A stretch of DNA of 64,000 nt from Phaeosaccion multiseriatum (GCA_965112735.1 OZ218962.1:620001-684000), one strand, 5' to 3'. Positions 2,947-16,317 are shown, counted from the stretch's first letter. Numbers and translations are program-made. Notes: generated by a model not told the origin, from the letters alone.

Positions 2947-3929
2947 AGAAAAGAGGACACATTGCTTAGGTGTGGGCCATTGACATGAAGCCGGTGGCCC
3001 CCCTGGTTCTTTCCTTCCTTCTCGATCACCTCACCAAGTCATCACAGTGTAAAGGCCTTCCTGCTGCAACTCGTGTAAAGAGCAGGGCTTCGCTTGCCAA
3101 GACAGCTATCTTCTAGTGAGAAGGAGCTTACCAGCATGCTGCGGCATGCCGTTGGATCGTTGGTGAAGGTAAGCGGATCTCTGGAAAGGGGACTGTCTGT
3201 GGCCGCAGATGGCGTTTTGGCTCCAGCCGACGAGCAATACGCCAGCGGAGCAGGGCGCCGTCACTATTGATGTTGTGGCTACTGCAAGTAGGCCCCGTGG
3301 GAGGAGGGCCGAGGCTTTGAAGTGGATTGTGTCCGGAGAAATTGGGCGGGAAGATGCGCAAGGATCTTTTCCTTGGGTGGGAGCGGGGCCTTGCGGGACC
3401 CATCCTCCGCTGCTGTGGCGCACGCGCCGGTCGCAGGAGAGGAAAAGGGCGTGGAAATTATGCGATCCGCAGCTTCCATTGTGGCACCGGGGGGTTTGGA
3501 TGCAGACAGAGCTAACCAAGAGGTGGCGGAGCTGCTGAGGTGGAGCGGAGGACTGGGAGCAGAGCAACCGCTGCAGCAGCAGAAGTAGTGGCATGAGACC
3601 AGTCTCAGCCTGGCTACATAGAAGGGGAATTTTTTTCTCTGCCCCTCCGAGAGCACGGCGCGTTCGACGCTGAGGCTGCGGGGCACCGCCTCTTCCCCAA
3701 CGAAGCCGGCAAGGAGGGGCAACAGCAGGAGAGCACCGCAGCTGGTGATACAGCAGCAGCAGCAGCAGCAGCAGCACAGCACTGGGGATCGCATCTTCCC
3801 GCCCCTCCCCCTTCTCTCCCTACTCTGTTCACTTTCCCACAAAGCCGCGGACCACCCCAATCTCTAATCCCCCCCCTCTCTTTTTAAAATACCCCGCCAC
3901 ACCCCCGCACCCACCTCCGCCCACCGCAG

Positions 3930-6900
3930 GGTTCGTCCCTCCGTGCCGCGCAGCATGGCGCCGTGTGCCGAAAGTCCGTGCTCCCCGCGGCCTTCTCTCC
4001 CGCGGCAGGGCTGGCTCGATCCATGAGCAGCTCTCCGACGACGGGCGGTGCGGCAGGGGACATCATTGGCATTGACCTGGGCACCACCAATAGCTGCGTT
4101 GCCATTATGGAGGGGAGGACGGCAAGAGTCATCGAGAACACAGAGGTATAGGGTAGGGTAGGGTAGGGAGGTTGGCGTGCGATGGGACGGATGTGACTTT
4201 GTGAAGGCCGAGAGGGGGAGGAGGGGGGAATGGTTGACAGTGCAATCAATTCAATTCGGTGGAGGTGTTCGCATCTCACGACTGGCGCAAGGGAGGGAGG
4301 GGGGTCCTTCGCGAGTGGCTCTTGCTCCTTGGTCGAAAGCCTCGACATTCACCGTCCGTTCGACCGCCGTCCGCCTTCCTCTTGTCTCATTTCACCCTCT
4401 TGCTCCTGTGCTGGCTTACCACACCAACCCCACCCCAACCCAACCTACCCAGGGAGCGCGCACTACCCCCTCCATGGTAGCTTTTCAGGCCGACGGTACC
4501 CGCCTCGTCGGACTGGCGGCCAAGCGACAGGCAGTGACCAACCCCGCCAACACGCTGTACGCCACGAAGCGGCTCATTGGCAGACGCTTCAAGGATAAGG
4601 AGGTGCAGAGTGTGCAAAAACTCGTGCCGTACGAGATTGTGGGCGGCGGGGCCGATAGCGGGGACGCTTGGCTCTCGGCAGGGGGCAACAAAATGAGCCC
4701 TAGTCAGGTGCGTGTGTGTGTGCGTGTGTGTGTGCGTGTGTGTGTGTGTGTGAGTGTGGGTGAGAGATATTGGGGGGGGGGGGGGTTGCGCGTGTCTGCG
4801 TTTGTGCGTGTGTGTGCGTATGTGCGCGTGTGTGTGTGCGCGTGCGTGTGCGTGAGAGACGCAAGGTGCTACTGACACGGACACTCGATGGAGGCCGACG
4901 TGTTGTGAGCACATGTATCAGCATAGCCTGCCTTGAGTTGCATTGCGGACTCGAAACCCTTCTCACATGCTACTACTTCCACCACACCGCATGACAACCA
5001 ACCAACACAACCTACAGGTGGGGAGCATGGTGCTGGTGAAGATGAAGGAGACGGCAGAGAACTTCCTTGGCAGACCGGTAGGTAAGGCCGTGGTGACGGT
5101 GCCTGCCTACTTTAACGATTCGCAGAGGCAGGCCACCAAGGACGCCGGGAGGATCGCAGGCCTCGACGTGCAGCGTATCATCAACGAGCCCACAGCAGCG
5201 GCCCTCGCCTACGGGCTTGATAAGGCAGACGGAAAGCTCATTGCGGTGTTTGATCTCGGAGGAGGCACGTTTGATATTTCGATTTTGGAGATTAGCGGCG
5301 GTGTGTTTGAGGTCAAGGCGACGAATGGAGATACTATGCTCGGGGGGGAGGACTTCGATGAGCACTTGCTCAAGCACCTGGTCGGGGAGTTTAAGAAGGA
5401 CAGCGGCATTGACCTCAGCGGGGATACATTGGCAATGCAGGTGAGTGAGCGAGTGAGCGAGTGGATGGGAGGGAGGGGAGGGAAGGAGAGGAGGGAAGGA
5501 GAGGAGAGGGAGGGGGGTTGGTTAGGGGCACATGGATGGGGAGGGCGAAGGAGAGGCATATGGGGAGGGCGAAGGAGAGGCATATGGGGAGGGCGAGGGG
5601 GAGAGAGAAAGGAGAGAGAGCTTTGAGCGAAGATAGGGCACAGAGAGAAGGAGGGGGACTGGAGAGGATGGACGGTGAAGACTGATACTATGTTGCGAAA
5701 GAAAGTCTCCCTGAAGCGAGACAGCAGAACGAGGAGAGGGGTGAGATGAGAGACGTGAACACTGAGGATGAGTTTTAGAGGGCACAGCTCAGGTTTTCAA
5801 CGCGAAGATGAGTGCAGTTGAAGAACTGCAGAGTGGAACGGGGGGTTGGGGGGAGTGGGGAGAGGGGAGAGCAGAGAGAGGGGAGTCTGATGAGAAGCAA
5901 GTGCCACACACACTACAGACCGTTCAGCAGAGAGAGAAGAGAGGGAGACGGGCCTCAGTGCAGTGTCTCGCGCAACGGACGGCTTGGCAAGACCTCCTTC
6001 ACGCCACCCCAAATGGTCCAGGGGAGGACCGAAGGGGTCTGTCTGATATGGAGGTGGATGTATGGCCACCTTGTCTTGCCTCCTGCCCCGCTCCGCCCTG
6101 CTGCCTCACTGGCGGACTTGCTGACCTGCTGTGACAACCGCTCATCCCTTTGTCTCTCTCTCTGCTCTCCTCTTTCCCTATCCATCTCTCTGTCCCCCCT
6201 CTCTCGCCCCTCCCCGTCTATCTCTCTCTGTGTATCTCTATCTCAATACATTTTTGTATGTATGTGTGCGAATATACACGCATTCGCTTCCTTCTCCTCA
6301 GCGCCTCCGAGAGGGTGCGGAGAAGGCCAAGCGCGAGCTCGATGGCCTCGCACAGACCGACGTGTCCCTTCCCTTCATCACGGCAGACGCCACGGGTCCC
6401 AAGCACATGAACGTGAAGGTCACTCGAGCGGGCTTCGAGAAGCTGGTGGACGACCTGGTGAACCGCGCCATTGAACCCTGCAAGAGTTGTATCAGGGATG
6501 CGGGGATTGAGAAGAAGGAGCTGCATGAGGTGTTGTTGGTGGGGGGTATGACGAGGATGCCCATGGTACAGACCAAGGTGGAGGAGTTCTTTGCACGAGT
6601 GCCCAGCAAGGGTGAGTCGAAGGGAGGGGAGGGAGGGAGGGAGGGAGGGGAGGGAGGGAGGGAGGGAGGGGAGGGAGGGAGGGGAGGGAGCGAGGCAAGA
6701 GAAGGAGAGGAGAGGGCCAGGGGAGGGAAGCAGGGGAGGGAGGCATACACAACACACTCAGACACTCACACACACAGACACGCTCACACTCGCTCCCTCC
6801 CTCTCCCTCACGCACGTGAAGGTGTGAACCCCGACGAGGTGGTGGCCATGGGCGCCGCCATTCAAGGAGGCGTATTGAGGGGAGATGTAAAGGACATCCT

Positions 6901-8191
6901 CCTGCTCGACGTCACGCCGCTGTCGCTGGGCATTGAGACGCTGGGCGGTGTGTTCACCAAGCTCATCAACCGCAACACCACCATCCCCACCAAGAAGGAG
7001 CAGACCTTCTCCACAGCGGCGGACAATCAGTCGCAGGTGCAGATTAAGGTGCTGCAGGGAGAGCGAGACATGGCAGCAGACAACAAGGTATGTGTGTGTG
7101 TGTGTGTATGTGCCTATGTGTGTTGACTACAATGTATGGAAGAACGCTGGGTTGGGATTGGCGTGTTTGTTTTGCTCTTCCAGAGCCCACTTCTCACGTG
7201 CCCCCCCCCCCCCCCCGCCCCACTCCCCCAACCCGTACCACCAACCGGTACACCACAATCCTGACGAACAGTCACTGGGAGAGTTTGACCTTACCAGCAT
7301 TCCTCCGGCGCCACGAGGCGTGCCCCAGATCGAAGTCACCTTCGACATCGACGCCGACGGCATCCTGCACGTGTCTGCCAAGGACAAGCAGACCGGCAAG
7401 GAGCAGAGCATTGTGATTCAGAGCAGCGGGGGTCTGTCGGAAGATGACATTGCCAAGATGGTGAGGGACGCAGAGGCGCACGCAGGCGAGGACGGCAAGA
7501 AGAAGGCCCTGATTGAGGCCAAGAACGACGCCGACTCGGCCATTTACGGCGTGGAGAAGAACATGCTCGAGCACAAGGAGAAGATCTCCGAGGAGACCAA
7601 GGAGAAGGTGAGTGGACTTGGGTGTTGGGTGGGTGGGCTTGGGTGTCGGGTGGGTGGGCTTGAGCGTGGGGTTTGGGCCCGTGTGGGTGTGGATGTGTGC
7701 AAGTAAGTAGGCTTGGTGGGTAGGTGGGGGGCTGCACACCCCATACATTCATCTGCTCTCTGCCGTGCGTTTCTCTTACCACGTATATTGACATTTTCCC
7801 TCCTTCGCTTCCTTCCTTCCTTCCTTCCTTCCTTCCTTCCTTCCTTCCTTCCTTCCTTCCTCGTGTTTGCAACCGTCCATCATACTCACCATGACACACA
7901 CGACACACCACACAGGTCACAGCGGCGGTGGCGGAGGTGCGCAGCGCGGTGGAGGGCGAAGACGCTGATGAGATTAAGACCAAGGTCGGGGCGTTGCAGC
8001 AGGTGGCACTCAAGATGGGGGAGGACATCTATGGCAAGACCTCTGGGGGAGGGGCAGCAGGAGGGGAGGGAGGGGCAGAGGGGGCCAAGGAGGGGGACGC
8101 GCAGGAGGCGGAGTTCACAGAGAAGAAGGAGGGGGAGGAGGCTGATGCGGGCAAGGAGGGAGAGGGAGACAAGGACAAGAAGCAACCATAG
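3930..8191 (+). CDS. HSPA9: Mitochondrial Hsp70 (DnaK-type); at least 7 exons, first coding exon not located
   Basis: [99 protein letters not shown]. Presequence-like Arg/Ser/Ala N-terminus, no EEVD. Exons ~3930-4145, 4453-4707, 5018-5440, 6302-6611, 6822-7087, 7272-7607, 7916-8191. Confidence 0.95.
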
Positions 8192-8978: not shown

Positions 8979-11900
8979 TCACAGAGGCACGGGACTGAGG
9001 CTCTCTCGAGAGGAGCACACAGAACGCGGCCCTACCGTATCACCAACTGCTGCTGCTGCTGCTGCTGCTGCTGCCTGCCGAGATGGCGAAGGTGGTAGTG
9101 GCGGCTGTGCCTTGGCTGTCCCTGTCCCGCTGCCGAAGTAGTCTCCCAGCAGCGGCGAAGAGTGGGACGTGTCTCGCTCCGCCACGGGCTCCGGCGACGG
9201 CGAGCGAAACCGATTGTTGCCTGCCGATGTGTCTCCTCCGGGAGAGGAAAAGGGAGAGAAGCCCAGGGGGGACGAGGTTGATGCTGCCGAGCCAGAGCTT
9301 AGCTCGTACGCCTCCACCCCAAATCGAGAGCGTGGAGAGCGCGGTGAAATGCCGCCCCCTGGGGATCTGTGGCCCGTGCTGCCCACGCTGCTTGCTCCGT
9401 CTTCGTCATGGGCCCCGCCGCCGCCCCCGCCCCCGCCGTTGCCACGGTCTCTTCTTCTCGTTCGGTGGCAGCGGCTGCTACTGTTGCTGTCTGTGGAGAG
9501 AGGAGATGAGAGTCGCGCCGTGGGAATGGCGAAACAGCCCCTTCCTCCTCCTCTTCCCCCTCCCCCTACCTCGCCTGGACTCCCCCCCGGGGTCCCGCCC
9601 CCCCAACTCGCGGCACTTGTTGGTCCGTACAGCACCCGCGGGCTGAAGTTGAGGGCCTCCTCGTCGTATTTGTGGCGTCTGCTGCTGCCGATACGACTGC
9701 TGCTGCTGCCCCCGGCCCCCCTCCTTGTCGCCCATCCTGTCCGTCCCTTTGTTGGCGAAGTCTCCACAGTCAACGCAGTGATGGAGCTCTTCTCCGCCGC
9801 ACCGCTGCCCAGATGACTGCCGTTGCTGCTGCCGCTGCTGCTTTGCTGCCGCTTGTGAGAATCTGCCCCGCCTTTGCCCCTCCCTATTCCTCCTCCTCTT
9901 CCTCCTCCTCCTCTTGCCGCTGCCGCCGCTCCCACTGCTGCCGCTGCTGCCTTGGCCCCTCGTCTCAATGGCCCCTCCAGCTCTTTGGTGCTGCCATGCC
10001 TGCCTATCCCTGGCCCCTTCCCTCGCCCATCCACTGCCTTCGCACCCCCCTTGGCCGTTACGCCCCTCTTCTGACTGTCTCGCTCCAACCCAACCGTCGG
10101 CTCATACCCGTGCCCACGGGACCGTCCTCCGCTCCTCGCCCCCCCCCCCCGCTCTTCCTCCTCCTCCCCGCACCTCGGTGTGGGAGGGTAGCTATCGCCA
10201 TCTGTGCTATCCTCCCTGTGAGGGTCGAGCTTGCTATACATACCACCGCCTGCTCCTCCTCCTCCTCCTATCTTCCTCTTGGTCTTTCCTCCACCGCAAA
10301 GGCAAAGGCAAAGCACCGCAGCGGCAGAGTGTCGAACAACTCTGGCAATGAGCTGTCCGAGCGAAGGCATGTACAGTAGTAGCTTCTCTTCCTCATCCTC
10401 CTCCTCCCCCTCCTCTCCCCACCCCTTCCTTGTTTGGCTCTTGTGCCCCACGGGAGCCGCAGCCATCTTCGCGTGTTGTAGTGCAGTCTGTCTCTCCCTT
10501 CGAAGCGCCAGTTGGAACGCCAAGCCCAGAATTGCCACCACCACCCACACCAACACCAGTATCTGATAGGAGTGAGGCGAGCAGAGGCCAGCAGCGAAAG
10601 GCGAGGGGAGAGAGGAGACAGGAGAGAGGAGCGAGAGGAGGTTAGACCAGTACATTGACACGTTGGGTATGTCAAGAAGTTGGGTATGTGAGAGAAGGCG
10701 CGGAGGGACAGAGGCGGGGGTGAAAAGGGAGGACCCTTCTCGCAAACAAAAGGAGGGGGGAGGAGGAACGGTCTGCAAGGGAGGAAGGATGGTGAGCTTG
10801 CTCGCTGTGATGCAAGCAGAGAGAAGCTCAGGGGGGGAGGGTTCTGAGTGAGTGATTTGACCGAAATGCAAGGCGTATTGCTGTGGATAAGTGACTGCTT
10901 GGGTGAGTGACTGACTGACTGACGACGTTCGCTACCTTCGTCATTTGGACTCATTGACTTACTTACCTTGCACGTTCTCTGCTCCGCGCAGCCGTCGTTC
11001 TGTGGATCATCAAGCAGCTTGAACACCTCAGCGGGTGTGTCGAGGAACCGGCCCAGTCCAAGCTTCAACACCCCAGCACCGAAGGCCGCAGTGGCCACCA
11101 GGAAGGCGTTCGGGTGCAGCTCCTGTATGTAGGTGGTAGGCAGGTTAAGAGAAGGTGGGTAGGTGAGTGGGTGTGTAGGGTAGGTGGGTAGGTGGGTGGG
11201 TGGGTGAGTCGGTACGTATTGTTCGAAGTACGCGTATGACCCGAGGAGGAGGAAGAGGAGGAGGAGGAGGAGCAGGAGGAGGAGGAGGAGGAGGAGGAGG
11301 AGGAGGAGGAGAAGGAGGGGGAGGAAGAGGAGGAGGAGGAGGAGGAGGAGGAGGAGGAGGAGGAGGAGGAGGAGGAGGAGGAGGAGGAGGAGGAGGAGGA
11401 GGAGGAGGAGGAGGAGGAGGAGGAGCAGGAGCAGGAGGCTCATAGGAAAGCGCTTTCTCACCTGTGGGAAGGCCATGATGGTGCATGCGAAGGAGAGGAT
11501 TGTGAAGAGCGTCCAGTTGGCCACGGTGGAGCCGAGGGCCCGTGCCAGACCAACGTCCACAGCGAGGCAGAACATGACCATAGCCAGGGCAGCGACGGTC
11601 TTGTACCTGGCCAAGAGGCACAATGAGGGGGGACGAAGGGGCACAATGAGAGGAACGAAGGGGCACAAGAAGAGGGGCCAAGAGGCACGAGAAGAGGGGC
11701 CAAGCTAGAGCCCCTCGCGTACCTGGCCATGGGGCTGTGGTGCGAGGAGAGGTACCCGATGAGCATTCCGGCGGCGGTGGCGCAGGTGATGACGAGAGGG
11801 TCCGAGCAGAGGAGGTAGTGGGCCACCGCGGCCGCTTTGAAGGCGCCAACCTAGGGGAGGGAGGGAGGGAGGGGGGGTGGGAGGGAGGGAGGGAGGGAGT

Positions 11901-13656
11901 GAGGGAGTGAGGGAGGGAGAGAGAGGGGGAGTGAGGGAGTGAGGGAGGGAGAGAGAGGGGGAGGGAGGGAGGGAGGGAGACATATGGGCGAGTGATGTAT
12001 CCGGAATGTGAGGGAGGAGCGGGATAGACACACGGGCAGTGGCTCAAAACGCCGCCCCACCCCTCCCTTCCCCCCTCCCTTCCTCCCTCCCTCCCTCCCT
12101 CCCTCCATCACCTCACCTCAAATCCGAGAACGAAGGTGTGAAACCCCGCGTGTTGCTCCCCGAGAAAGGCCATGTAGGGCCCCATAAGCACGGCCGAGAA
12201 GGCGAGGAAGGAATCGAACACGCGAATAGACTTGACGTGCGGTGTCCACCACACACCCGTATCATCTTGGTAGAGGCGGATGTAGTCGATCTTCATCCTC
12301 TGTCCTGTCTGATCTGCCCGCCCTCCCTGTCCTGCCTGGTCAGGGGAGGCGTAATCGACCCTCTCGAGGCCAGTGTCGGTCTCGTCTTGATCTTGAGGCA
12401 CAAGCCCCATTACCCCTCCACTGCTTGTGCTGCGGCCGTTACCGTCTCTGCCCCCACTACTTTCTTCATCGCTTGGGCCACTGCCATTGTCCCCTTTGCT
12501 CTTGTCATTGTCATTGTTCTTGTTCTTGTTCTTGTTCTTCTTCAATCCCCTCCTCCCCGCCCCGGCCCCTCCGTCATCTCCTTCCTCTTCCTCTTCCTCC
12601 TCCTCCTCCATTTGCCCCCCAGAAGCCCCCCCCTCTCCTCCTCCTCCTCCTCCTCCTCCTCCCAGGCTGAGGAGGATGTGGAAGGGCTGATCGAAGGGCG
12701 CCTTCGACAAGCTGCCCTCCCCGCCCGTTGCCTCACTGTACCACTGCGTCTTAGTGCAATAGTGCCAACCGTCCACGAGCCAGCGAAAACCCTTCTGGGT
12801 CCACTCGACGGAGTAAATGTGGTAGCCTCCAGACAAAAGACTGCCGCTACTCCCTCCTGCCCCTCCCCCTTCCTCCCCCTCCCCCAGAGTACTTGGAGAG
12901 TACTCACACCTCCCTGCCGGGTCGGGCCATTCCTGAGAGGACACCGTCTCTACAGATGCCTCGTCCGCACCACCGAAGAGCAGCGAGCCGCTGACGGTGT
13001 TGGTTTCTGCGACGGGGTTGTCAGCCTGGTGGGACGAGAGGCCCATACGCCGGAGATAAGGGGGGGTCATTGGTGGGAGGAATGAGGCGTGGTGACTTCC
13101 TGGGTTGGGGGTTAGTTCGTATGGCATGTTTGTCTCTCTTGGTATGGCCCTGCTGGCTTTTCTCTCTCTCCCCCCCCCCCCGTCCTGCGTTCCACAGCTC
13201 CAAGCATGACTGATGCTTTGTCTCTCACCTCCTCGACTACGATGACTTGTCCCCACTTGATGGTGCTGACGGTTGGGGCGAGCCAAAGCTTGGGCCACAG
13301 CCCTTGCCCCTGTGGCAGCCAGATTCTCGCCTCCACCCGACCGTATATGAAGCCTCCCTCGCTCCTGAGGAGGATGAAACTCGCATCATTATCCTCGCCA
13401 TTGGGTCCTGGGCCGGTGCTGCTGCTACTGCTGCTAGAGTTCCTGCCCTCGTCGTCTCCAACTCCGAGCAGCAGCTCTCCGTCTGAAGTGAGCTCGACGC
13501 TCCCTCCTCCCTGGATCGTCCATTGGCCTTGGTTCAGTGCCTGGAGAGAAATGTTGCGGCGCGGGGAAGGAAGCAAAGACGGGCAAGGATGGGCAAGGAG
13601 AGATATGCCAGAGAGGGCGGGAGAGGGAGGGGGAGGGGAGAGAGAAAGAGAAACAG

Positions 13657-13692
<36 letters not shown>

Positions 13693-14144
13693 GAGACGCC
13701 GGTGTGAGATAGATAGAGAGAGAGAGAGACAGGGAGCGAAAGAAAAGAGACGGGAGGGAGGGGTGAGATAATGAAGAGGGAGAGAGAGGTGTGTGCAGGG
13801 AGAGAGGAAGATGTGAGTAATAAAAAAACTAGGGAGAGAAATAATCTGTGAGAGAGACACGAAGGTGGGAGTGATGGAGGGAGAGAAAGGGGAGAGAGAG
13901 AGGGAGAGGAAGAGAGAGAAGCAGTGTGCGTGAGAAGAGAAGAAGGGAGAGAGAGAGATTTGTGTGAGAGGGGGAGGTGTGTGTGAGAGAGAGACGAAGG
14001 TGTGAGAGAGATGGAGAAACAAGCGAAGCGACTTGCCTCGTTGAACTCGTCTGCCCACACCAGTCGCTCCTGCCCCTCCGACAGCACTACCCTCCCACGC
14101 TCTGCAACCCCCAAAGCCCAGAGGAGGACGGCAAAGCGCCGCAT
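8979..14144 (-). CDS. Signal peptide + GH16 (laminarinase-like, catalytic motif degenerate) + 7-TM TMEM198/TM7SF3 (DUF4203)-like domain + ~500 aa disordered tail; 7 exons
   Basis: Exons ~14144-14037, 13540-13229, 13025-12117, 11850-11723, 11606-11462, 11122-10967, 10562-8979. GH16 motifs LVWADEFN, YGRVEARIWLPQGQGLWP, YHIYSVEW, APFDQPFHILLSL, MKIDYIRLYQ. Seven hydrophobic segments ending ATAAFGAG...GRF and WVVVAILGLAFQ. Confidence 0.85.
11243..11435. repeat. Long (GGA)n/(TCC)n trinucleotide tract in an intron
   Basis: Directly visible; explains the spurious poly-L, poly-P and poly-G ORFs here. Confidence 0.95.
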
Positions 14145-14178
14145 GGCTTTTTTCTAAAAATTATCCAGCACTTAACCG

Positions 14179-14227
14179 CCTTGTATGTCAATTAACCGCG
14201 GGGTGGCCGTTTAATTGACATACAAGG
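14179..14227. promoter_or_regulatory. Perfect 17-bp inverted repeat (CCTTGTATGTCAATTAA-N15-TTAATTGACATACAAGG) in the divergent GH16/ankyrin intergenic region
   Basis: Arms 14179-14195 and 14211-14227 are exact reverse complements. A regulatory role is inferred only from position. Confidence 0.6.
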
Positions 14228-14448: not shown

Positions 14449-16317
14449 CATGCAGAGCCCAACCTTCAGCAGAGAGGTAAGCCCCTTTGTATGGCCATGC
14501 CTTCTGTTCCGGGGCCGAATTGGTCCGACGCTGAACGGCGTGGCCTTCCCTCGGCGAATGTTTTATTTTTCCCCCCTTCCCCTCCCTTTCCACTTGCTTT
14601 TACTTCTCACTCTGCCATCCTCCCTTCGTCTCCCCTTATTTTCGCGGGAGGGCAAAGATCTCTACTACAAGCGGGTCGCCTCCCAAGAGCAGTGACTCAC
14701 CACCCCTCTTGTTTTCCGCCTTTTTCGCCCCCCGGCGCTCTCTCCTCCCTCGGGCGACACAAGGCCACGCGCCTCGACGACGCCATCAGCGGGATGAAGA
14801 CTCTGAAGGACGTCAAACTGGCCATCAGCGCCCTTGTTGCCAAAGAGGGGGGAAGGAAGGCTTGCCTTGACGCCGCGATTTGTGCTGAGGGGCACACTCC
14901 AATGACAGCAGCGGCGTTGGGGGGTAGAGCAGACATCGTGGAGCTTCTACTGGGGGAAGGGGCATCTCCAAACCACGAAGCGATGACTCTTCACATCGTC
15001 ACACCATTGATAGGGGCTTGCGTACGTGGCCATCTGAATGTCGTGCAGATACTGATCGAGGCCGGTGCGGATTTGGACCAAACACTTGACATGGGGACGG
15101 CCTTGTGTGCAGCTTCAGACGGTGGGCACGCAGAAGTCGTCAGAGCTTTGATCGCGGGGGGCGCCGATGTGAATCGAGCCGCGAACAACGGAACTACACC
15201 TCTGAGCTTAGCTTCATGGGGCAATTGTGAGGGGGTTGTGAGGCTGCTCCTTGCGGTCAATGCGAATGTGAACGATGCCGCCAACAACGGAAGTACCCCA
15301 CTGGTAATGGCGTCACTGGACGGTCATGAGGAGATGGTGGAACTGCTCCTCGCGGCCAATGCCAATGTGAACCAGGCCACCAACGACGGAAGTACACCAC
15401 TGATATTGGCGTCGAAGTACGGTCATGAGGAGGTGGCGAAGTTGCTTCTTGCCAGCAACGCAGATGTGAACCAACTGAGAAACAACGGAGCTTCGCCACT
15501 TATTGTGGCTAGCGACAAAGGGCATACAGGGATAGCGAGGCGGCTACTTGCAGCTGGTGCCGAAGTGGATCCTGTGAGTGCTACGGGAGCAACACCTCTC
15601 ATGGCGGCCGCGCTGCAGGGACACACTGAGATGTTACGTGAGCTCATCTCAGCAGGGGCAGACGTGGATCGACATGCCGCGGAGGGGAGTACTGCTCTCG
15701 TATTGGCAGCCGCTAGCGGACACGCTGAGGTGCTGCGTGAGCTCATCTCAGCAGGGGCAGACGTGGATCGACATGGCGCAGAGGAAAGGACTGCTGTCAT
15801 GGCGGCAGCGCACCGTGGATACGCTGAGGCTCTGCGTGAGCTCGTATCGGCAGGGGCAGACGTTGATCGACATGACGAGGAGGGGAGGACTGCTCTGCAC
15901 TTTGCGGCGAGCGAAGGACATGGGCATGTCCTGCACATCCTGCTCAAGGCGGGGGCTGAGGTGGATATCAAGGATGACAGCGGAAGAACTCCCCTCCTCT
16001 TCGCAGCATACCACAATCATGAAGGGGCGATGCACGAGCTTCTCTGCGCAGGGGCGTCTGTGGGCAAGGCTCTGACTGCTGCTCGAGAGCTTGGTCTCCT
16101 GCAAGAGGTCCGTGGCCATCTTCTGATGGCAGACAAGCGGTACTTCGACTCCCAAAGCCCGGCGGACATTATGCGGACGTGCGACTCGACCTTCGGCAAG
16201 GAGAGGGGCCTACCGCCGCAGGAGAGGGGCGTGTCTTCCGACAACGTGCTGGAAGTGGCTGCAGGCATGCGCGGAGCCGACGACGCTTCCAGGTGGAAGA
16301 AACTTGACACGCATTGA
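14449..16317 (+). CDS. Ankyrin-repeat protein, array copy 1 (12 ANK repeats)
   Basis: Exon 1 MQSPTFSRE|GTAAGC (ends 14476), phase-0 intron to CACAAG| (14763), exon 2 to 16317 with 12 G-x-T/S-P/A-L repeats. Start codon uncertain. Confidence 0.88.
   Translation, partial: HAEPNLQQRGKPLCMAMPSVPGPNWSDAERRGLPSANVLFFPPSPPFPLAFTSHSAILPSSPLIFAGGQRSLLQAGRLPRAVTHHPSCFPPFSPPGALSSLGRHKATRLDDAISGMKTLKDVKLAISALVAKEGGRKACLDAAICAEGHTPMTAAALGGRADIVELLLGEGASPNHEAMTLHIVTPLIGACVRGHLNVVQILIEAGADLDQTLDMGTALCAASDGGHAEVVRALIAGGADVNRAANNGTTPLSLASWGNCEGVVRLLLAVNANVNDAANNGSTPLVMASLDGHEEMVELLLAANANVNQATNDGSTPLILASKYGHEEVAKLLLASNADVNQLRNNGASPLIVASDKGHTGIARRLLAAGAEVDPVSATGATPLMAAALQGHTEMLRELISAGADVDRHAAEGSTALVLAAASGHAEVLRELISAGADVDRHGAEERTAVMAAAHRGYAEALRELVSAGADVDRHDEEGRTALHFAASEGHGHVLHILLKAGAEVDIKDDSGRTPLLFAAYHNHEGAMHELLCAGASVGKALTAARELGLLQEVRGHLLMADKRYFDSQSPADIMRTCDSTFGKERGLPPQERGVSSDNVLEVAAGMRGADDASRWKKLDTH

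Follow-up and report, generated by a model that had tools for sequence, protein, structure and literature searches.

A degenerate laminarinase-type GH16 domain fused to a TM7S3/TM198-like seven-helix domain in Phaeosaccion multiseriatum

The stretch of Phaeosaccion multiseriatum DNA analyzed here, 64,000 nucleotides in length (GCA_965112735.1 OZ218962.1:620001-684000; hereafter the window), harbors on its minus strand a seven-exon gene at 14144..8979, for which six-frame translation and splice-site mapping give a single uninterrupted open reading frame (ORF) of 1113 amino acids (aa). The encoded protein consists of a signal peptide, a laminarinase-type GH16 jelly-roll, seven transmembrane (TM) helices, and a long low-complexity cytosolic tail. 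An earlier reading made from the DNA sequence alone (the sequence-only reading) had proposed a candidate beta-glucan receptor with a pseudo-catalytic ectodomain at 8979-14144, and these limits coincide precisely with the stop and start codons of the gene. Exon 3, searched exhaustively against 1.84 billion representatives, recovered one protein of the same layout, P0010 (571 aa). Database searches and folding were carried out with exon pieces or with P0010. The domain architecture is assembled from known parts, and in this combination it is new and apparently undescribed.

The GH16 ectodomain and its active site

Assignment of the ectodomain to GH16 relies on matches of its two exonic halves. 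Exon 2 scores 15.1 bits and exon 3 scores 20.8 bits against PF00722, each below the 22-bit cut-off with their sum above it, and the best PDB matches of both pieces are laminarinases (4crq with E 1.3e-7 for exon 2, 3iln with E 2.5e-9 for exon 3). Alignment with canonical GH16 domains places the LVWADEFN of exon 1 on the canonical LVWxDEFxG motif. Pfam searches with the window pieces and P0010 recognize no domain besides GH16 ahead of the TM region. The SKN1_KRE6_Sbg1 family (PF03935) likewise has no match in the window pieces or in P0010; ordinary GH16_3 relatives do match it.

The translation of exon 2 ends in ...STIKWGQVIVVEE (...LWPKLWLAPTVSTIKWGQVIVVEE) at 13229 and exon 3 opens with ADNPVAETNTVSGSLLFG at 13025. 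The spliced active-site strand is WGQVIVVEE/ADN, in which the slash marks the exon junction, exactly as the sequence-only reading had written it (KWGQVIVVEE/ADN). A column census of 61 canonical GH16 domains identifies what has changed in this strand. The nucleophile glutamate, present in 100% of the canonical domains, is Gln134 in the window protein and Gln148 in P0010, and the helper aspartate (100%) is Ile136 in the window protein and Asp150 in P0010. The acid/base glutamate (100%) is kept as Glu139 in the window protein and is Asp153 in P0010, and the histidine of GTxH in column 253 (98%) is Leu156 in the window protein and Trp166 in P0010. The claim that the nucleophile has become Gln, the aspartate Ile, and that the histidine is lost is therefore borne out by both the alignment and the census.

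The window GH16 domain has also lost the WGNNELQxY segment and, by the column census, the Asn of NLAVGG. Flanking aromatic motifs had been said to remain, and they do. The tryptophans of LWPxxW survive, as do the Trp that precedes the catalytic Gly, the EW strand, one more Trp, PFD, and the closing (I/V)DY(I/V)R strand, and the census finds Trp at five of five cleft or core Trp columns.

The canonical motif GE[IL]D[IV]ME is present in more than 100 of the 117 full GH16 domain segments among the 150 best matches of the exhaustive search, and because so many related domains are canonical, the change in the window protein represents a true departure from the norm. One possible refutation raised beforehand was that other splicing restores ExDxxE. 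Around intron 2, 29 in-frame alternative pairs of donor and acceptor sites were examined and none yields this motif; nor does an E.D..E pattern occur in any minus-strand frame of 12100-14200, so splicing does not rescue the site. As judged by these alignments, the ectodomain is a GH16 fold, GH16_3-like and apparently derived from a laminarinase, and not a catalytic member of the family. Having lost nucleophile, helper Asp, and cleft His, it is predicted to be unable to carry out hydrolysis by the retaining GH16 mechanism, with much of the fold still in place.

The seven-helix half, the relative P0010, and the tail

The junction between the two halves of the protein lies inside exon 3, which takes in GH16 core sequence, the last strand (MKIDYIRLYQ), TM1, and TM2. 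Because exon 3 alone spans GH16 into TM1-TM2, the two halves belong to one protein independently of any splice call. P0010 has the same order: its signal peptide precedes a GH16-like domain, after which come seven TM helices and a tail that is short. Its ORF has no introns and lies on a JGI metagenome contig of 4.8 kb, which a Logan assembly also contains. The recurrence of the layout in an intronless ORF indicates that the fusion is no gene-model artefact. The earlier claim of GH16 and seven TM segments on one chain therefore stands, and the alternative that the GH16 and TM parts are two genes is rejected on the strength of the exon 3 junction and of the intronless relative.

Conservation between the two proteins extends over both halves. 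From the last GH16 strand to past TM7 they align gap-free with 166.5 bits and 43% identity over 215 columns, and the GH16 parts are ∼39% identical. A tblastn search of the window with P0010 recovers exons 3, 4, 5, and 6 collinearly at their modelled coordinates and no paralogue elsewhere in the window. The catalytic strand of P0010 is GQIDFMD, so the Gln nucleophile change is common to both proteins; the prospect that orthologues are catalytic, also raised beforehand, is not borne out by the sole relative found. P0010 has further lost cleft tryptophans, with R128, M132, and L207 in those columns of the census. Its GH16 domain is nonetheless readily detected, scoring 36 bits against PF00722. 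The AlphaFold model of P0010, built from a 70-row alignment, has an ectodomain pLDDT mostly above 90, and Foldseek places this ectodomain on the laminarinases 4crq and 6jh5 with target TM-scores of 0.86-0.88. An Atlas fold search with the whole P0010 model returned GH16 clusters only. Because the Glu-to-Gln change is common to two proteins with 39% (GH16) and 43% (TM) identity, it is most simply read, from these two sequences, as an old loss kept under constraint, with convergence as the alternative.

The contig that carries P0010 (L001, 1-4836) has a GC content of 52-56% and tightly packed ORFs on both strands, including a convergent 393-aa ORF at 3308-4489, and in this it resembles the genome of a compact-genome eukaryote.

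The TM half comprises seven hydrophobic segments at aa 409-606, as defined by hydropathy, and AlphaFold runs of P0010, both whole and for the TM region alone, give seven long helices at low confidence. The window TM exons are too short to score in Pfam alone, so the family assignment goes via P0010. Residues 265-500 of P0010 match PF13886 (TM7S3_TM198, formerly DUF4203) along profile positions 2-199 of 199 at E 2.2e-6; the score of 27.9 bits falls 1.3 bits short of the gathering cut-off of 29.2. A language-model search with P0010 also ranks TMEM198/TM7S3 clusters first (0.82-0.84, with 202-210 of 256 features shared), a result to be taken at the level of a lead only. The resemblance to TMEM198/TM7SF3 proposed in the sequence-only reading is thus upheld in part, as the seven TM segments are found and the profile is matched over its full length, with a score that stays beneath the threshold. 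The description of the TM half as TM7S3/TM198-like is accepted as an assignment by proxy from a sub-threshold profile score. No match to the 7tm_1/2/3-type receptor families was found by Pfam on P0010 at E up to 10, and no signalling domain is recognized by Pfam anywhere in the protein, in the window pieces or in P0010. The gap-free conservation of the TM half argues that it is more than an anchor.

The signal peptide indicates that the N-terminal domain is luminal or extracellular. Together with the RRER that follows TM7 and the predicted outward position of the long TM6-TM7 loop (KLLDDP, Cys-x5-Cys), it is consistent with a topology in which the N-terminus is out and the C-terminus is in.

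Approximately 35 residues past TM7, both proteins carry an acidic cluster that ends in Leu-Leu, GEEGEEEDEEEKLL in the window protein and DEGGEEEGLL in P0010. In both, this block is followed by a comparable L(Y/H)xPxLxQxI stretch, at which P0010 ends. Motifs of the [DE]xxxL[LI] type are adaptor-binding sorting signals. The 89-aa tail of P0010 contains two of them (shuffle P 0.005) and the window tail contains one (P 0.15), which is not unusual for so long a tail. The conserved acidic di-leucine hints at endosomal or vacuolar trafficking. In stramenopiles and haptophytes, the GH16_2 protein TGS, which has a luminal GH16 domain, one TM segment, and a tail with sorting motifs, is assigned to the vacuole (PMC10543733).

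Gene model, reads at the locus, and neighborhood

The features of the gene are collected in the table. Consensus splice sites are present at every junction, and no frame break occurs across the 1113 codons. The intron 1 junction restores the canonical DEF-x3-L-x3-W spacing in the alignment. Junctions 3/4, 4/5, 5/6, and 6/7 are validated by P0010, which is collinear with exons 3-6 and gap-free across the TM junctions. Pairwise alignment took the place of MAFFT for the short pieces of exons 6 and 7, which MAFFT placed incorrectly. The low-complexity insert of exon 3, which P0010 lacks, separates the last GH16 strand from the strand equivalent to NLAVGG. The 507-codon frame of the tail (aa 607-1113) is expected to be open by chance at this composition with a probability of ∼4e-7.

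Table. Features of the seven-exon gene, with positions counted from the first letter of the window
Feature	Position	Strand	Description
Exon 1	14037..14144	-	ATG; signal-peptide-like N-terminus MRRFAVLLWALGVA; first GH16 strand LVWADEFNE; donor GCAAGT
Intron 1	13541..14036	-	496 nt; GC-AG; packed with GA-type tandem repeats
Exon 2	13229..13540	-	GH16 strands through the degenerate catalytic strand
Catalytic-strand remnant G133-Q-V-I-V-V-E-E140	13229..13252	-	Defined by alignments with canonical GH16
Intron 2	13026..13228	-	203 nt; GTGAGA...CAG; separates active-site strand from ADN...
Exon 3	12117..13025	-	Second GH16 half, low-complexity insert, last strand MKIDYIRLYQ, TM1 and TM2; tblastn with P0010 residues 193-240 and 256-315
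Leu156	12978..12980	-	Position of the conserved His in GT(I/L)HyG
Low-complexity insert (aa 262-383)	12297..12662	-	Poly-G, poly-E, and NK repeats; only coding frame open throughout
Exon 4	11723..11850	-	End of TM2 (GAFKAA motif) and TM3; tblastn with P0010 residues 319-361; phmmer alignment
Exon 5	11462..11606	-	RYKTV motif, TM4 and TM5; tblastn with P0010 residues 358-408
Exon 6	10967..11122	-	TM6 and outward loop (KLLDDP, conserved Cys-x5-Cys pair); tblastn with P0010 residues 404-460
Exon 7	8979..10562	-	TM7 at 10503-10562, then cytosolic tail; stop codon 8979-8981
Acidic cluster and di-leucine GEEGEEEDEEEKLL (aa 634-648)	10377..10421	-	Aligned with DEGGEEEGLL of P0010
Low-complexity C-terminal extension (aa 668-1113)	8982..10319	-	Open frame only; no P0010 counterpart and no Pfam match

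All eight tandem-repeat arrays detected at the gene lie within inferred introns, one of them overlapping the final three bases of exon 3. The arrays are located at 11154-11206, 11243-11438, 11609-11704, 11855-11979, 12061-12119, 13638-13729, 13877-13919, and 13947-14011. Micro- and minisatellite arrays such as (GAG)65, (GGGA)31, and (GA)46 occupy four of the six introns (1, 3, 4, and 5). The donor of intron 1 (14031-14036, minus strand, GAG/GCAAGT at the exon border) belongs to a GC-AG pair; the remaining five introns are GT-AG.

Metatranscriptome runs at the locus match only low-complexity sequence, namely a C/T-rich coding tract at 12850-12885 and a GA-rich tract at 13954-14010. The repeat tracts and the stretch at 12850-12885 attract unrelated metatranscriptome contigs and so give rise to false RNA matches at the level of 5-6%. 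The runs that do cover the locus are genomic DNA, and contigs of one of them, X8, cross intron borders unspliced, including those of intron 2. A joint in X8 between 12882 and 13417, in which 534 nt are skipped, was considered as a splice and discounted as a repeat artefact, as its ends are CC..GG and its short side covers 20 letters. This joint is probably an assembly artefact at the C/T-rich tract, with a structural variant as the alternative.

Upstream of the gene, at 14179-14227, lies an inverted repeat of 20 nt, CCTTGTATGTCAATTAACCG / CGTTTAATTGACATACAAGG, which is 95% complementary with a 9-nt loop and sits 35 nt upstream of the ATG. It falls within a short divergent spacer shared with an ankyrin gene that starts near 14491, and it occurs nowhere else in the window, with 0 matches to be expected by chance. 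It may form a small hairpin or act as a promoter element common to both genes. On the opposite side, an ORF fragment at 7928-8191 (plus strand), convergent with the 3' end of the gene, resembles the C-terminal end of an Hsp70/DnaK-type chaperone by reading only.

Comparison with known systems and candidate functions

The closest structural counterparts of the ectodomain are the GH16_3 laminarinases (Zobellia ZgLamC 4crq, the marine enzyme 6jh5, and Rhodothermus 3iln), with which it shares the beta-jelly-roll and motifs of the LWPxxW, EW, PFD, and VDYVRVY type. In contrast with these enzymes, the window protein lacks nucleophile Glu, helper Asp, and His as well as the GNNELQxY segment, and its GH16 domain is fused to seven TM helices whereas the laminarinases are soluble or CBM-linked. 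A membrane-tethered luminal GH16-type domain is also found in Kre6/Skn1 and in the algal TGS (GH16_2, beta-1,6 branching), the latter linked to beta-glucan metabolism in stramenopiles and haptophytes (PMC10543733). Kre6, Skn1, and TGS have a cytosolic tail with Tyr or di-Leu sorting motifs, and the tail of the window protein has a di-Leu. They differ in having one TM segment, PF03935, and an intact glucan-binding/catalytic site, whereas the window protein has seven TM segments, no PF03935, and a dead site.

Dead GH16 folds that serve in glucan recognition are represented by the insect GNBP/betaGRP proteins, which bind glucan mainly via a separate N-terminal CBM39 domain. These proteins are soluble and secreted; the window protein is membrane-embedded without CBM39, and only the dead GH16 is held in common. 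The pseudo-glucanase Rv0315 of M. tuberculosis (4wzf), which appears at Foldseek ranks 46 and 48 for P0010, is likewise a GH16 fold minus its catalytic residues. It is soluble and secreted with no multi-pass membrane domain, unlike the window protein. Among the closest relatives of the window GH16 are two tandem GH16 proteins, P0005 (469 aa) and P0008 (506 aa), with 45% and 39% identity, respectively. In each, a canonical first domain (GEIDIME and GEIDVFE) precedes a second in which the active-site strand has degenerated (GDITVVQ and GQIDVFA). Unlike the window protein, both are soluble, with one intact catalytic domain and no TM region. Their occurrence suggests that pseudo-GH16 modules recur in the microbial eukaryotes of their group.

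TM7SF3 and TMEM198 (PF13886) likewise have a seven-helix domain, to whose profile P0010 scores just under threshold, and known members lack a glycoside-hydrolase-like ectodomain. TM7SF3 itself has a large N-terminal ectodomain ahead of its seven TM segments, as does the window protein. Reports on TM7S3/TM198 proteins describe an LRP6/Wnt scaffold, a stress attenuation factor, a candidate organic-cation antiporter, and an sPLA2 receptor, with no link to glucan, and TM7S3/TM198 is not an established receptor family. G protein-coupled receptors also have seven helices, but no 7tm receptor family is matched by P0010 in Pfam.

The sequence-only reading had stated that no protein of this architecture is described, and a full-text literature search agrees with it, as no paper was found that pairs GH16 with DUF4203, PF13886, or TMEM198. 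Word-indexed protein searches with the exon 3 open frame, the whole P0010, and the P0010 TM region returned nothing but P0010 and GH16 proteins of the ordinary kind. Neither protein library contains the window's own protein, two metagenome scans gave no additional relatives, and the Atlas search with the whole P0010 gave no cluster of GH16 plus TM7S3 architecture. These searches covered length windows, word seeds, and Atlas clusters of at least 50 members. The GH16-7TM family is therefore best described as rare and undescribed rather than unique.

The best explanation, which is given about an even chance of being right, is a non-hydrolytic glucan-binding or glucan-sensing membrane protein and not an enzyme, as read from the sequence features above. 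The retention of the cleft tryptophans in the window copy is what suggests glucan binding, and the ectodomain is probably beta-glucan-binding. It would act as a lectin that grips a beta-1,3-glucan of the laminarin or chrysolaminarin type without cutting it, while the seven-TM module and the tail would tie glucan binding to membrane partners. The tail would direct adaptor-dependent traffic between the surface or the Golgi and the endosomal or vacuolar system, and the outcome may be signalling, cargo sorting, or aid to the cell's own glucan metabolism. Several observations weigh against this explanation. With GNNELQxY, the NLAVGG Asn, and the catalytic residues lost, the cleft may no longer bind beta-1,3-glucan. 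The family consists of two known members; the confidence of the TM model is low (pLDDT 40-77 in the whole P0010 and 45 for the TM domain alone), and the sub-threshold PF13886 score was obtained on P0010 and not on the window's split sequence. Short sorting motifs easily arise by chance, as the P value of the window tail illustrates, and the ∼450-codon low-complexity extension has no homology support, its open frame being the sole support for its coding status. The run search found exon 3 in no RNA run, so the gene and its junctions have no transcript support and the junctions rest on homology and splice consensus.

A more specific version, in which a single-chain beta-1,3-glucan receptor captures laminarin-type glucan on its dead laminarinase domain and the TM7S3/TM198 module relays occupancy to the cytosol, is doubtful. 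Signalling through the long cytosolic tail, after glucan on the dead GH16 changes the seven-TM bundle, which is the strong form of the sequence-only reading, is likewise unlikely; its ligand could be wall glucan of foreign origin met at the cell surface, or laminarin stored in the vacuole. Such a receptor would draw on the topology of an outward ligand domain, seven TM helices, and an inward tail, on the conserved TM domain, on the pseudo-enzyme state common to both members, and on the insect precedent for dead GH16 in glucan recognition. It is countered by the lack of any signalling domain or 7tm-GPCR family match and by the standing of TM7S3/TM198 proteins, which are not established ligand-gated transducers. 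The tail is low-complexity, is without a P0010 counterpart past the di-leucine block, and carries trafficking-type motifs instead. An accessory role in the synthesis or remodelling of the cell's own beta-glucan, by analogy with Kre6 and TGS, is a further sub-case, of low probability, in which the protein is a non-catalytic tonoplast or endomembrane partner of the GT48 glucan synthase or of GH16_2 branching enzymes, the ectodomain holding nascent chains and the TM7S3-like module docking. In yeast, diatoms, and haptophytes, beta-glucan synthesis requires luminal GH16 proteins that are anchored in the membrane (Kre6, TGS; PMC10543733; PMC7965971), and the di-leucine sorting motif is conserved. 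Yet the domain is GH16_3-like rather than SKN1/KRE6-like, with no PF03935 match in P0010, the distribution of GH16_3 does not follow GT48 in stramenopiles (PMC7965971), and apparent rarity is odd for a core pathway component.

The GH16 origin could also be incidental, the ectodomain being a generic beta-sandwich or a binder of another ligand in a TM7SF3-type role, e.g. transport with a lid or capture ectodomain. This is improbable, even though erosion of the cleft is heavy (with loss of the nucleophile, Asp, His, GNNELQ, and the NLAVGG Asn), P0010 has lost further cleft Trp, and TM7SF3 has been linked to proton-coupled antiport of organic cations (PMC9413594). All five cleft or core columns are still Trp in the window protein, which has the EW strand as well, and both members keep a recognizable laminarinase fold after long divergence. 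That the protein is still an enzyme, a transglycosylase or hydrolase using non-canonical residues such as Glu139/Glu140 with another nucleophile, is highly improbable. The window protein keeps the acid/base Glu with an adjacent second Glu (VVEE), but in P0010 the acid/base residue is Asp and has no Glu beside it, and because no alternative catalytic pair is common to both members, residual activity is unlikely. E-to-S and E-to-A laminarinase mutant entries are among the Foldseek matches of P0010. These are presumably the nucleophile-substituted laminarinases that crystallographers use to trap substrate complexes, a use that speaks against activity of a nucleophile-substituted site. A decaying pseudogene or gene-model artefact is scarcely credible. 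It could appeal to the missing RNA evidence, to the absence of the protein from both libraries, and to the long low-complexity stretches. Against it stand the 1113 codons without a frame break, the consensus splice sites throughout, the slim chance of the open tail frame, and the gap-free alignment at 43% identity to an independent intronless ORF.

Laminarin and chrysolaminarin rank with the most abundant carbohydrates of the sea. To our knowledge, no protein is known to sense or escort laminarin inside the algal cell. Only GT48 and GH16_2 are firmly tied to laminarin metabolism in stramenopiles (PMC7965971). A membrane protein with a non-cutting laminarinase fold facing the lumen or the outside is a concrete, testable candidate for a role in glucan sensing or escort. 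The TM7SF3/TMEM198 domain, biochemically unsettled in animals, gains a fusion partner with a predictable ligand. Domain fusions have often exposed the function of orphan domains. If the receptor reading were true, the orphan TM7SF3/TMEM198 family would gain its first ligand and a first receptor logic, and the protein would be the first dedicated algal sensor for the ocean's main storage glucan.

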